DNA of 64,000 bases from positions 124,001-188,000 of the forward strand of contig JAIVFI010000013.1 of assembly GCA_025558095.1 (NCBI GenBank), in the 5' to 3' direction. Positions 20,931-26,879 of the stretch are shown here, in pieces. The position numbers and the translations under genes were made by a program. Source of the stretch: Hyaloraphidium curvatum SAG 235-1 (lineage: Eukaryota; Fungi; Monoblepharomycota). Position 1 is the stretch's first letter. Every line of letters starts with the position of its first letter. Below the pieces are notes generated by a model. The model made no database searches. It saw nothing but the letters and a program-made list of their open reading frames with translations, and was not told the origin of the DNA.

Positions 20931-22596
20931 TCATAAGCACACGCTCTCGAAAACGAGGGTGAGCGAGGACCCCCTGGCAATACTCCACAATCCCACAGCA
21001 ACGGTAAACGCGGTGAGCGCCACCCCCCTTATGACCGCATAGGTAACCTCGAACCCGAGGAACCTCGCGCGGAGCCCCTCGGCCCCCACCAGCCCCTCCA
21101 GGACCCTCTCATGCCTCCGCGCTTCCTTGACCGCCGCCGGATGCGCACAGGGGTACGACAGGAGCAGAATGCGCAGATCCGCCGCGGCGCGGCGGCAGGC
21201 AGAGGCGACGGTGGTGATCTCGGCGTTGGCGGCGGCGGTTTCCACAAGGCCCCGGAGCAGCTCGCCGACGACCCAGAGGATGCTGCCGAGCTGCCATGCA
21301 GGGATGCAGGTTGCTCCAGCCTTATGACGCGGATTGCTCAGCGAGCGCAAAGCGTTCGATAGGCAGCACACTTACGATGTTGATCGTGAGCGCCACCACT
21401 TCTCCCACAAGCAACATGGACAGCACGAGCCGGTATTGGTTAAAAGCCGACAGGCGCGATCGCGAAGCCGCGGCGAACGAGGAGTGCAGGCGCACGTATA
21501 GTGGCGGTGCGCCCGCCCGGTCCTGGATCGGAGAACATTCGGCCGCCGCCAGAAGTTTCTGGCAGCTCGAGATGGCGTGTGACAGTGCGATCGACATGGC
21601 GCGGTTGTGCAGGCGCAGTTGGAGGTCCAGGATTGGAAGGATGTTGTTCATCCAGGACAGACCGGCCATGGCACTTATCGTTGAGATGACCTGAACGAGA
21701 CCTGGTGACGAGGTTCAGTCCAGTCGGAGAAGAGTTCTTCAAAAACGAGCCTCACTGGCAGCAACAGCAATCAGCGCTCGCCACCAGGTACCCCATGTCG
21801 AGGCAGCAAACGTTATGAGCTGGGTTATCATGCACAAAATGCAGTATATCGCGGTCACCGCGATCAAAGCGGCGGCGGTGCCCGCAGCCTGCATCCAACC
21901 GGTCCTACGCAGAACGTTGCCCGCGCAAGATGGGGCTGGGCAGGGGCATAGCCGATCCTTCGGGTCGTGTTCGAGAAGCGGCCCGTCGGCTGTCCTCGCT
22001 CCCACCCGTGACGAGGTCAGCTGACCGTACCGCACCAACGGCGCGAGCACGTGGAGATCGAGCGGTGACCCCGTGTCTTTTCCCTGCTCCTCGTTGTGCT
22101 CGCCCACTGCGCGGCGTCGGAAGGTTGCCTCGAGCACCCCCGTGGCGAGTATGGGGATCGACCAGGCGACTTCCAGCACGACGAACGCCGCGGTACCGAA
22201 GGCGAGCTGCCGATGCGAAAAGCGCCCGTCATTCTCGGGCCATATCATCGTAAACAGTGCTGTCCGTAGGCCGTCATAGAGCAATAGGCGCCCGGGAACG
22301 ACGAAGCGCGCGAGCGGCGCGTTCAGCTCCTCCAGCCGGAACATGCCCGCGAGCACCGAAGAGCGCGAGATGCCGTCGACGAAAGTGTCGCGGCCGAGCG
22401 GGTTCCGTGCCCGCGCCGACGCGGCCTCGGGCGCAGCGTCGGATTCGGCCAGCCCCGCGACGAGCGGGCGCGGTAACGGCGGCAGGGGGACAGGGAACAG
22501 GGCGAGCCATGCCGCGTCGGAGAACGTCGGCTCCACGGAAAACGTCGGCTCCGAGGAGCCCGATTCCTTGGTTTCGAGCGTGGGCGTGGGAGCCAT
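20931..22596 (-). CDS. 7-TM membrane protein, gustatory-receptor/7TMIC-like (copy 1)
   Basis: Three exons (introns ~21702-21754 and ~21321-21375). Seven hydrophobic segments; C-terminal RARFLGFEVTYAVIRGVALTAFTVAVGLW. Clear paralog of 25366..26879. Confidence 0.7.
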
Positions 22597-23080
22597 GTTG
22601 TGGTGAAATCCCGCGGTGGGGAGCACCATCCCAAGGCAACACCGCGTCATTTAGGACAACACGGGCAATCGATTGGGTCTCATCTCGCTATAGAAACCGT
22701 ACAACGCGGACTGCTTTTGGCATTTGATTACACGGCGTCGAATGCTGTGGACGCTGTCCGTCATTGCCCGGACGGTGACGTGGGCGGAATACTGGGATCA
22801 GCTGAAGGGGAGGAAGGAAGTGGGTCGACGCGGACCTTGATGGCCGTGTCACATATGAACGACAGCCCGACAATGAGGGCTTCGCCTCCCATCGCGCACG
22901 CGCCTCGTGCTGGTTAGTCCGGGCAACGGCCCGACGTCATCGAGTCGTTGGCCGTCCCGCACGGGTTGCCAACATACGCACATCGATATGAATAGAAAAG
23001 ACTCTCAACCAATGAACTATCGCAACCCGTCTCGACTCCTTTCTAAAACTTGATGATCGAAACGCCGCCCCGCAACTCTA

Positions 23081-23747
23081 TCATGGGAACGGGTCCGTGA
23101 TCGTCGCGGTATACGCGAACGTGGTGCACGCGTCGTCCGAGAAGAAATCCACCGAGTTGCAGCCTGCCCCGAACTTGACGGAGCTCGAGGAGGTAGTCGG
23201 CACGCAGTCACCCGGAGCGTTGGGTACGTTTTGGAGGCTCAAGGTCCCCACCGACGTTACGAAGGGACAGGTGCCGGGGTAGACGCCAATGTTTCTGATG
23301 GGTCCGACCAAAAATGGATTGAAGCAGGCACCGGTGGCCCCGTAGAACTTGGTGGTGATCCCGGGTTTGTCGAAGCAGTTGTTTGAGGCGGGCGCGTAGC
23401 GGCGGTACAGCGAGCGCAAATCGCCGGCGTGGTCGACGCAGGCGATGGGCGCCTCGGCGGTGGCGGCCGGGTGGCCGAACTCTGGCGGGATGGCGGGATC
23501 AGGGGGCGGCGGGGCATGTTGCCGGTTTGCGCGGGGACACGAACCACAAAAGGAGCCCTCCAGGCAGTCACTGCACGAGCGGACAAACAGTGTCACGCCG
23601 CGGTCGCCGGCGGTGGGGGCGGCGTGGACGGCGCTGCGGGCCGCACGGGCGTCAGCAAGGATGCCCCGGCGTTGCGACGGCGGTCCTACAGGGCGGCAGC
23701 AGCCAGGACGGCGCCACCAGCAGGAGGGCGGCGGCGGCGCGGGGCAT
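23081..23747 (-). CDS. Small secreted Cys-containing protein; apparent 1-nt frameshift in the signal peptide
   Basis: MPRAAAALLLVA joins AVLAAAAL|AVHA only if one base is added near 23712. Two introns. Mature part ends PGDCVP...FGAGCN...CT...TITDPFP*. Confidence 0.6.
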
Positions 23748-23789
23748 GGCGATGTCGGCGGCGCGGATCCAAAGGACGCGGGCGGCAAC

Positions 23790-23812
23790 GGGGGGGGGGG
23801 GGGGGGGGGGGG
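23790..23812 (+). repeat. Poly-G tract (G23)
   Basis: Homopolymer run about 40 nt upstream of the minus-strand ATG at 23747. Confidence 0.95.
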
Positions 23813-25365
23813 AGGGGAAGGTGGGCGAGAACCGCAAAAGTCTTGGGCGGCGCCGCGATTACGGCGGCCCTGGCGGCCGAGCGGCCCAGCCGCCAGCACC
23901 GCTCATCCCTACGGACCGGCATTGGCGCGAGACAGTCCTCCAGCCTTTCCCTATTGCTGGCGGCCCTTGGCAGCTGCCCGTCCACGATAATGGCAGGCCC
24001 CGGTAGCAGAGGCGGAGGAGGTGTGATCGGGGCGGGTCAAATCTGGCGGCGATGGTCTGGGCTCGGTCCAGGCCAGGGCTCGCCCGCGCACCGATCCCCG
24101 CCAAGACGGTCGAAACAGCATCGGAGGAGCGGCGGGTCGCGGTTCAATGGTGTTTCGTGTTTCGCCCGATCGCGTTGGGATCATTGTCGGCGGCGCAGAG
24201 AGACGGGGGATGATACGACCACGACTGGCATCCGCAAAAGGAAGCTGACGACGAACGGAGGGCACACCCAAAATCACCGCCGCAGTGTAGCGGATCGGGG
24301 TCTTTGGTCACGTAGGAGGTGCTCGCGAACAGTATCAGATGCATCAAGTCGGGCGGGATGGGACCTCGACGTCGCTGGCTGGTGGAAAGCGCGAGGGCCC
24401 TCCAGTAGCTTTGCACGACATGCGAGCTCGAAGGCGTCCCGCACCAGGGGCCGGTAGGCGACAGCTGCGGCCAGCACTTCCGACACGGTGATGCCGAGGG
24501 CCGTCATGTCGGGGACCTGTCGCTCGGGGCCGGGAGGTGGAGGCCGGCGGACAATGCCAGCATCTTCGCTCGCAGGGGGACCTACGGATATCGGGGAGAT
24601 CGGCGAAGGTGTGGTGGTGCCACTTGCGAGTTTCTGTTCTGTTTCATGGCGTCGTCAGCTTGGGCAGCTTCATGCGTGCGTTCAGACTCTCGGATCGGAT
24701 GGGACCGCTTCACCCTCATAGAGCTTGGCAAGAACCCGATTGACTGGTCAAGCACATCATCCACTGAGCAGCAATAGGCCACTCTACGATAGAATGGATG
24801 CGATACCATCTTTTGAGCTTAAAATCTGGTTCTAGCTGTACCCGACGCGCCGCCAACGCAAGGTCAACCACGGTCTCTAGCGGCGCGCGGCCTCCGTCGA
24901 CAAGCACCGTCTGCCTCCCCTCGACGATTCTGACGGCCTGCCTCCCTCCCCTCCGATCCCGATCCGGCTGCACCAACCGCCCCTTGTGGACTGACAGCTG
25001 CTGGATCTGGACCTGCGGAACATGGCGAACCCGGGGAATAATCAGGTTAGTGCCCGTTCAACGTCGACCGGGGGGCCGCCGCCGCCAAGAGACCGCAAGG
25101 CGTCGGCTTCGGCTGGGAGTTGGCAGACCTCCCACTACTGGGTCTACGGGCTCAGGAGGTAATGCGATGACCTCGAGCAACGCGGCACTGCTCGCTTTGG
25201 GGCGCGTTGTTTTCTTCGCGCGCGGGCAGTCGGCAACGTGCTTCGGTTCTATGACAACGGGTGTGGACTTCAGCAAACACCCGCCAACTCCACCTTTTGA
25301 AGACCGCCAGTGCGCGCGAGCAAATTGACCGGGAAGCGGTCACGCGCCCGGCTCCATTGAGACCA

Positions 25366-26879
25366 ATGTCCCGCGACCCCGTAGAAGTTGCGGTCGACGT
25401 GCCGCCGCGCGATGCCAAGCAGTGCGGCCTGCTCTCGGATCGCGAGTGGCTCTGCCTTTTCCCGGCCGCGCCTCCGCCCCCGGCCCCCGACGCGACCGCG
25501 CTTGACCAGCCGAAAACGGAGGACCCGGCCGCAGAACTGCGCGCCGAGCGGCCGCTGACGCGTGCCGCGCTTGTCCGCGGCCTCGCCGGATTTCCGGCCG
25601 CCAAGGCGTTCGCCGCGGTGCAGATGGCCATCTCCCCGTTTGCCCACCGCATACCGGGGCCGGCAGGTCTTGCGCTACACGGCTCCATCATTCTGGCGAC
25701 CGTTGCGACCGCCGTGGCCAACTCAGTTGCGGGCACCTTTGGACCAGCACAGATGGCAGCCGGCGCTGCTGGGGTTATCTTGCTGCCGGTATCTCTGCTG
25801 TTGATGCTTCTGTACGTCGTCGCCACCGGCACTGGCATCTCCATGTTTGGGCTCCGCGGCCGCAACCGGTCGGCGCAAGCTCCTCCGGACAGGGACGTCG
25901 GAACCCACCCCCTGGCTATCATCGTGCGTTGGCTGGAGCTCCGCGAGACGGCCATGACGGAGCACTCGGCTTTGCTCGAGCATGATGCGACCGATGCCTT
26001 CTGCCCGTGCCCGGACCGAGCGTGCGCTGGTCAGCTTCCGAACACGGCGGGATGGTGGCGCTGGGGCCGACTCGCGTTTTCGTTTCTGTCTACGGCGGGC
26101 TGCTGGTTCTTCATTGTTTACACGGGATTTATCACCCTTGGCCCCGTCATGTGGCACGTGTGGTATGGCATCGCCGCCAATTTCGCCTGCATTATCGTCA
26201 TGAATGGATGGTTTCTCATCGCGCCCTTCATCCGCATTGCCGGCAGCATCCCTGCGGACCGACTTCGGCTACGACTCCGGCGCCGGGCCGCCGCTCTCTT
26301 TCTGCGGGGGCTCCTTGCTTCGTACCGTGGCTTATCTGCACGGGATCCGGTGTCGGAATCGAACGACGAGGCCAAGGCAGCCATCTTCACCCTTCACGCT
26401 GCGCTCGTCGCTGCGTGGGACCGCCGTGCTGCCGCCACGGCCGTGACCCTCTCGTACCTAGCGGCCGTCCTGATTCCAATCGTTCTCTCTGCGGTAATCA
26501 ACGTCTCGGTCGGTTACTGCGTGCCGGCGTATTCCTGGTCGTGTTCAACGTTCTCTGCGTCCTTGGCATGGACATGGCTGTCGCAGCGGCGGGGAACGAC
26601 GAGATCGAGGCCGTCGCCAGGCTCTACCTCCGGGCCGAGGCCGAGCTCCGGTCGATCGTCGTGCGCCGAGGCAGCCCGCCCGGGGCCGCGGAAGCCGCGG
26701 ACGCGCTGCTCTCGCTCAGCCGCGTTCGCGAGTCCAGGGTCAAGCTGGCGGGGATGTACGTGGACTACACGGTGATGAGGACGGTGCTGGTGACATCTTT
26801 CACCGTCGGGCTCGGCATTTGGACTCTGCTGAGGTCGATCGGCGTCGCGGTGACTCTCGACATTGCTTGCCAGACGTAG
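25366..26879 (+). pseudogene. 7-TM gustatory-receptor/7TMIC-like protein (copy 2), intronless, frameshift near 26533
   Basis: Shares SDxxWLxLFP, LLEHDxxDxxCPCPxxxCAG, LRLxxRA and AAxNxEI with copy 1. The frame changes after CVPAY; the C-terminus RVKLAGMYVDYTVMRTVLVTSFTVGLGIW lies in ORF 26007..26879. Could be an intact gene with a sequencing indel. Confidence 0.65.

Follow-up and report, generated by a model that had tools for sequence, protein, structure and literature searches.

Results

Two genes for seven-helix membrane proteins

The window analysed here is a 64,000-nucleotide stretch of the genome of Hyaloraphidium curvatum, a monoblepharid, chytrid-grade fungus (contig 13, positions 124001-188000, of a 31.9 Mb assembly in 55 contigs), and is eukaryotic and GC-rich (60-70% GC). 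It holds two related genes for proteins with seven transmembrane (TM) segments, here called gene A (22650-20934, minus strand) and gene B (25366-26876, plus strand). A first-pass annotation, made from the sequence alone, had taken them for a divergent pair of paralogs resembling gustatory-receptor-like seven-transmembrane ion channels (7TMICs). We describe below their gene structure, their kinship, and the predicted topology and fold of the family to which they belong.

Gene A has three exons and two introns, both introns being confirmed by a spliced transcript contig from run X1. Exon 1 (21756..22650), delimited by its open reading frame (ORF), the exon border in the spliced contig, GT..AG placement and the family alignment, opens with an ATG at 22650, with further in-frame ATGs at 22629 and 22596, and encodes the N-terminus, TM1-TM3 and the start of TM4; the loop motif LLEHDPKDRLCPCPAPSCAG (21919..21978, minus strand) lies between TM2 and TM3, in the cytosolic intracellular loop 1. 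The final base of this exon is the first base of a Ser codon (AGT) that is split across intron 1 (21702-21755; 54 nucleotides, GTGAGG..CACCAG). Exon 2 (21376..21701) supplies the remainder of TM4 with its cytosolic extension, intracellular loop 2 and TM5, and includes the RLxxRA..LAL and Y..LH motifs of the family. Intron 2 (21321-21375; 55 nucleotides, GTAAGT..CATAAG) separates it from exon 3 (20934..21320), which encodes extracellular loop 3 (with CIPA), TM6, TM7a, the linker RARFLGFEV, TM7b and a terminal Cys, and which is followed by the stop codon at 20931-20933. The X1 contig links 20931-21319, 21375-21699 and 21754-22414, skipping 54 bases at intron 1 and 55 at intron 2 with CT..AC ends on the plus strand, and the intron borders were set by placing canonical GT..AG ends on these gaps. 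The gene is spread over three reading frames. Because the X1 contig skips both introns and the exon phases are compatible (895 + 326 + 387 = 1608 bases), gene A is an intact, spliced and transcribed three-exon gene.

Gene B has no intron. Its N-terminal frame (25366..26529; 388 codons, from the ATG to ..CVPA) encodes the N-terminus and TM1-TM5 and carries the loop motif LLEHDATDAFCPCPDRACAG (25972..26031, plus strand), again in a cytosolic loop. At 26530..26531 the gene has TA, one base short, in place of one codon of the intact paralogs; in the family alignment these continue in frame here, and the residue that follows C-x-P-A is in most cases a Tyr. The C-terminal frame (26532..26876; 115 codons, stop codon at 26877-26879) is open and encodes TM6, TM7a, the linker RVKLAGMYV, TM7b and a terminal Cys, out of frame with the N-terminal part. 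An X1 contig of 1749 nucleotides spans 25553-26879 without a gap and reproduces the assembly sequence, and a contig from X2 spans 26379-26563, also gap-free, with the same break. Since gene A is fully spliced in the same run, X1 behaves as RNA, and gene B is therefore a transcribed but frame-broken copy. Its own frame continues after the break through about 80 unrelated residues, and gene B alone would yield a protein without TM6 and TM7. Because the shifted C-terminal frame is open and shares 50% identity with the closest intact paralog, the break is recent, or else there is an intact second allele that the contigs do not display.

Two other accounts of the break were considered and set aside. 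An intron can be rejected at this position, where there is no downstream AG before the conserved region, no GT..AG pair fits and the transcript contig runs colinear to the genomic sequence; an assembly error is less likely, the two read sets (perhaps of the same strain) being concordant. The X2 contigs, at a depth of about 5, have one base fewer than the assembly at 21137 in gene A and at 26142 in gene B, and X1 (depth 30-73) matches the assembly at both positions; these one-base gaps are probably errors of thin data, a strain difference being possible.

Membership and spread of the family

The long exon of gene B matches exon 1 of gene A at E 5.9e-19 with 30% identity, and the pieces of both genes align lengthwise with 35 intact intronless paralogs; in the searches, exons and pieces were used separately. 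A quick tree joins gene B to copies on contigs 41, 28 and 12 (SH-aLRT support 99) and places gene A elsewhere, on a long branch. The divergent orientation and the homology claimed in the first-pass annotation hold, but the two genes, at about 30% identity and in different clades of the tree, are by these comparisons neither a sister pair nor recent duplicates. That annotation needs correction on other points as well: an unrelated gene intervenes (23081-23899), gene A has two introns, gene B is frame-broken, and the family occupies at least 105 loci and not two. This last figure comes from a genome search with the long exon of gene B that returned 115 matches (E down to 1e-63), and it is a lower bound, 106 of 484 first-look candidates having been scored. 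Most of the matches are open frames of about 500 codons, with some six carrying stops. Copies are loosely clustered, three lying within 30 kb on contig 28 and four within 42 kb on contig 12, and further divergent pairs occur on contigs 14 and 20.

When 1.84 billion representative proteins were searched with the family profile, 474 matched at E<=1e-3, 422 at E<=1e-10 and 304 at E<=1e-30, and 27 of the top 150 matches are identical to genomic loci collected here. Family members have been deposited under names of the form 'hypothetical protein DFJ74DRAFT_*' (for example KAI9003006.1). The origins of 23 proteins, picked partly for unusual composition, were looked up: 19 are from H. curvatum, three from contigs of SRR26194948 and one from metagenomes. 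Three of the four proteins from outside H. curvatum show the loop-motif pattern, and the full-length ones retain the TM7b region and the terminal Cys. The lineage-specific family that had been proposed is thus lineage-restricted as far as visible, and sequence comparison shows a real family of hundreds of members, mostly but not only in H. curvatum. A word-index protein search, in which the index was swamped by common words, returned nothing, or only the query and one protein, for the long exon of gene B, the family alignment and an environmental relative.

The three SRR26194948 proteins (P0037, P0063 and P0076) are encoded on contigs L053 and L054 of a second eukaryote (about 55% GC), where the neighbouring genes are for enolase, ankyrin, helix-loop-helix and PP2C proteins and a TRPY1/YVC1-type channel; the loop-motif pattern is present in two of them, and the TM7b region and C-terminal Cys in all three. 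Among the annotated members are three longer ones, P0006 (772 residues), P0015 (739) and P0048 (788; PF04402 on record), which exceed the others by 250-300 residues, the last of them with an extra Pfam domain. They may represent genuine fusions, or else gene models that were merged.

Topology and conserved residues

Family-averaged hydropathy gives seven hydrophobic segments, at about residues 77-99, 112-131, 217-236, 247-270, 347-366, 373-395 and 451-472 in the numbering of the paralog L004 (KAI9003006.1), which is used throughout; loop lengths, charges and invariant residues were taken from 36 paralogs. The outer loops 1-2, 3-4 and 5-6 have mean lengths of 9.5, 9.9 and 6.0 residues and the inner loops 2-3, 4-5 and 6-7 of 87.5, 71.2 and 64.5 residues, so that the segments are paired by short loops of 6-10 residues with long loops of 64-88 between the pairs, as had been read from the two genes. 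The short loops and the C-terminal tail (6-14 residues) are almost without Lys or Arg, and the N-terminus and inner loops are long and rich in both. Counted near the helices, each protein has on average 18.2 Lys and Arg inside against 1.7 outside, a charge bias which by the positive-inside rule implies an inward N-terminus and an outward C-terminus, the reverse of G protein-coupled receptors (GPCRs). The extracellular loops are shorter than the intracellular ones, as is characteristic of 7TMICs.

Invariant or near-invariant positions comprise L180, H183, D187, C190, C192 and C197 in inner loop 2-3 and, elsewhere, C368 (outer loop 5-6), N395, G444, R453, T458, T461 and C483 (outer C-terminal tail); gene A and gene B retain every one. 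The invariant cysteines fall into three inside, accompanied by one His, and exactly two outside. Both the LLEHD..D..CPC....CAG loop and the RARFLGF/RVKLAGM...R(T/G) region of the last helix read as they had been quoted in the first-pass annotation. TM7b has the consensus RTxxVTxxTxxVGLWSxLR and is preceded by a linker with the consensus RARFLGFxV. Along one face of this helix runs a stripe of polar or small residues (T454/T458/T461/G465/S-T468, spacing 4-3-4-3), bracketed by R453 and R471. Conservation peaks in TM7b and the linker (major-residue frequency 0.62-0.63) and reaches its minimum in TM1, TM2 and TM4 (0.32-0.33), a pattern that has also been reported for insect odorant receptors (ORs) and other 7TMICs (bioRxiv 10.1101/2023.08.30.555482).

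Predicted fold

L004, the closest intact intronless paralog, was modelled with AlphaFold2 from a 40-row alignment, with a pLDDT of 88.9 and a pTM of 0.89. The model contains long helices at residues 243-307 (243-266 and 272-307), 322-366 (322-340 and 345-366) and 372-415, which extend TM4, TM5 and TM6 into the cytosol and carry conserved residues there, resembling the 'anchor' of 7TMICs. TM7 is likewise predicted to be split, as in that superfamily, into helices 420-438 and 449-472 with the conserved RARFLGFxV linker between them. Short helices at 47-53 and 58-71 stand ahead of TM1, and the structural alignments begin at residues 44-57; 7TMICs have an N-terminal re-entrant loop (TM0).

The top Foldseek matches of the model in the Protein Data Bank (PDB) are insect chemoreceptors, namely the gustatory receptor (GR) BmGr9 (probability 0.97) followed by Gr64a, OR28, OR10, MhOR5 and Gr43a. 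When the Foldseek matches were re-aligned with VIA-align, insect ORs and GRs took ranks 1-19 without exception (19/19; Z 13.9-9.7), with alignments of 302-352 residues at a root mean square deviation of 5.2-6.7 Å that run from about residue 44 to 472 of the model and over nearly the whole target chain; rank 20 drops to Z 7.3 over 150 residues. A Foldseek-independent search of 48,161 representative PDB chains placed OR, GR and Orco structures in the top eight positions (Z 13.4-9.6), below which there are only partial helical matches, and none of the 50 entries listed (Z>=6.1) is a GPCR or a transporter. We assign the fold because one small family takes every top place and because the coverage is whole-chain and colinear. 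The 7TMIC-like reading of the first-pass annotation thereby gains support, the model matching insect ORs and GRs over the whole chain and no other fold. An outward N-terminus, another number of segments or a lack of structural likeness to 7TMICs had been named as outcomes that would speak against it; the charge count, hydropathy and model searches gave none of them.

Beyond the PDB, a shape search of the ESM Atlas returned unnamed clusters with TM-scores of 0.58/0.69 and 0.58/0.65, the members with a known phylum being mostly from Cnidaria and Echinodermata. A language-model search, with low recognition overall, reached DUF3537 clusters with a score of 0.92 (4/30 matches). The Atlas search also found a 313-residue cluster, 57% of it from viruses (Nucleocytoviricota), at a TM-score of 0.49/0.70 (0.70 by the cluster protein), and giant viruses may therefore carry proteins with the fold of the L004 model.

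Surroundings of the two genes

The ORF between gene A and gene B (23081-23899, minus strand) is 272 codons long, has a high content of Pro and Cys, and is probably transcribed, since 23002-23482 is represented by an X1 contig. Upstream of gene B, 120 bp before its ATG, is a dispersed repeat about 125 bp long (25120-25250), present in 23 genomic copies at 83-100% identity. On contig 36 a partial copy of 49 bp precedes, by about 100 bp, the region in which another member of the family matches at the protein level. In X1 the repeat reaches a word depth of about 9,500, compared with 30-70 for the genes, and it is common to contigs with differing flanks. Its plus strand folds moderately well (z -2.6), and tRNA and Rfam scans returned no tRNA and no Rfam match.

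Discussion

Interpretation and alternatives

Gene A and gene B belong to a very large, fast-diverging H. curvatum family, and we think it quite likely that its products have the 7TMIC fold and act as ligand-tuned channels. By analogy with solved OR and GR structures, the subunits would assemble as tetramers through the conserved cytosolic anchor of TM4-7a, and TM7b would line a central cation pore with its Thr/Thr/Thr/Gly/Ser stripe (454, 458, 461, 465 and 468) between Arg453 and Arg471. The TM1-TM4 bundle, with its low conservation, would form a variable ligand pocket, giving a repertoire of hundreds of sensors. The loop with His183, Asp187, Cys190, Cys192 and Cys197, which would sit in the reducing cytosol, most likely holds zinc, with a role in folding or assembly or of a structural or regulatory kind, and the outward Cys368 (TM5-6 loop) and Cys483 (C-terminus) would probably form a disulfide that joins the pore helix to the TM5-6 loop.

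Several observations weigh against this interpretation. At the level of sequence, the window pieces and 40 members have no Pfam match even at E<=10 (7tm_6, 7tm_7, DUF3537 and PHTF included). The Pfam profiles PF12056 (DUF3537) and PF08395 (7tm_7) find nothing in the genome, a weak negative given that the controls were silent too, and searching the PDB sequences with a profile yielded only chance-level matches to P2Y1 (E 0.2-0.6 over 95 residues). The TM7 motif of GRs, TYhhhhhQF, is absent, the TM7b consensus of the family being without Y..QF; nor is the 'G-hydrophobic-x-V-D/T' pattern, which the first-pass annotation had offered as typical of GRs, a recognised signature. The GR motif is discussed in PMC7746228. 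At the level of structure, the model is a prediction for L004, which is 34-50% identical to the pieces of gene B, and not for the window genes themselves; the Foldseek scores are weak (best E 0.037, TM-scores 0.28-0.40), and according to the aligner's own note helical models can attain Z values near 13 through arrangement alone. A homotetramer prediction with four copies of residues 243-485 scored 0.00, which that tool treats as neither for nor against. As to function, we infer channel activity and tetrameric assembly by analogy, and the zinc site and disulfide from conservation and topology. To our knowledge H. curvatum is without a motile stage, and the purpose of a large sensor array in such an organism is puzzling. 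On balance, the modelled fold argues that the family consists of structural 7TMICs, and homology to known 7TMICs is probable.

Of the rival explanations, the one that survives best, although we judge it unlikely, grants the 7TMIC fold and denies the ligand-gated chemosensory channel: the proteins would serve in internal membranes, as scaffolds or in zinc or redox sensing, and the family would have expanded for a reason unconnected with chemical sensing, for example non-self or virus recognition. A shared fold does not show function, PHTF-like 7TMICs lack a known channel role and have a long TM2-3 loop (bioRxiv 10.1101/2023.08.30.555482), and in the present family the TM2-3 stretch, similarly long (mean about 87 residues), is the conserved region that most sets it apart. 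The giant-virus Atlas cluster matches the same fold, and the tetramer prediction lent no support. Set against these points, the conserved pore helix and anchor beside a variable TM1-4 are what ligand-tuned channels display, the polar stripe of TM7b suits pore lining, and hundreds of divergent, loosely clustered copies, some of them broken, make up the birth-and-death pattern of receptor repertoires.

It is highly improbable that the copies are mobile-element cargo or an annotation artefact and not a selected host gene family. Such an origin would suit a family dispersed in hundreds of copies, of which some contain stops or frame breaks, and would suit the repeat upstream of gene B. Yet the copies, at only about 30% identity, retain the invariant residues together with reading frames that stay open over about 500 codons; the absence of any significant Pfam domain from the ORF pieces and the 40 members extends to mobile-element domains; gene A is interrupted by introns of its own and yields a spliced transcript; and relatives in another organism lie amid ordinary eukaryotic genes. 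The least credible reading, that of GPCR-like seven-helix receptors with the N-terminus outside, has the number of helices and the weak P2Y1 profile matches in its favour and is contradicted already by a charge bias opposite to GPCR topology, by the lack of any GPCR among the 50 entries listed from the 48,161 chains, by a Foldseek probability of 0.05 for GPR75, and by the short span and chance-level E-values of the P2Y1 matches themselves.

Significance

In a bolder form of the ligand-tuned channel interpretation, which we advance tentatively and regard as rather doubtful, several hundred functional ligand-gated cation channels with the OR/GR fold would have evolved in a non-motile fungus independently of insects, would have their gating or assembly controlled by a family-specific, cytosolic zinc- or redox-responsive His/Cys3 loop, and would serve chemosensation or non-self sensing. 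7TMICs are best known as the smell and taste receptors of insects, and reports from beyond animals and plants put them at one or a few genes per species. Hundreds of them in one 32-Mb fungal genome would, if true, mean that large 7TMIC repertoires with rapid diversification are no invention of animals; several hundred functional copies would make up the largest repertoire known to us outside animals, and a previously undescribed kind of fungal system for sensing chemicals or non-self. The family is invisible to sequence methods, its fold having been identified from predicted structure. It would supply many intronless microbial genes for structural and ligand studies of this channel class and, in the invariant cytosolic His/Cys3 loop, a new testable element, and it leads one to ask what a planktonic, non-motile fungus might be sensing with a repertoire of this size.

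Comparison with known systems

Plant DUF3537 proteins (PF12056), which share the superfamily fold according to the literature, are language-model neighbours of the family (0.92), whereas the PF12056 profile is silent in the genome and in the 40 members. We know of no solved PHTF structure for comparison. PHTF-like Class-B 7TMICs (bioRxiv 10.1101/2023.08.30.555482) differ in that the family has no Pfam PHTF match at E<=10.

For fungi, the published reports describe two Spizellomyces species with one 7TMIC gene each (PMC7746228); chytrid 7TMICs were not recovered in the structural screen that followed (bioRxiv 10.1101/2023.08.30.555482). Our literature search found no paper linking Hyaloraphidium with 7TMICs or receptor gene families. 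SpunGRL1 and SpalGRL1 of Spizellomyces (PMC7746228) resemble the present family in being candidate 7TMICs from early-diverging fungi and in having a TM7 motif that is weak or missing. Compared by description, the Spizellomyces gustatory receptor-like proteins are single genes in each species that were found by similarity to animal relatives (PMC7746228), while the H. curvatum family numbers hundreds and has no detectable similarity in sequence to GR profiles.

The closest comparison is with the insect receptors AaegOR10 (8v00/8v02), MhOR5 (7lic), AgamOR28 (8v3d), BmGr9 (8vc1), DmGr43a (8jm9) and Orco (8z9a), to which the predicted fold corresponds over the whole chain (Z 13.9-9.6). Identity in these structural alignments is just 5-11%, and the cytosolic His/Asp/Cys3 loop and the outer Cys pair are conserved marks of the family's own. 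The features that appear common to both are the seven helices, the inward N-terminus and outward C-terminus, the short outer loops, the long TM4-6, the split TM7, a C-terminal pore helix that is the most conserved element of the protein, and a large and divergent repertoire.

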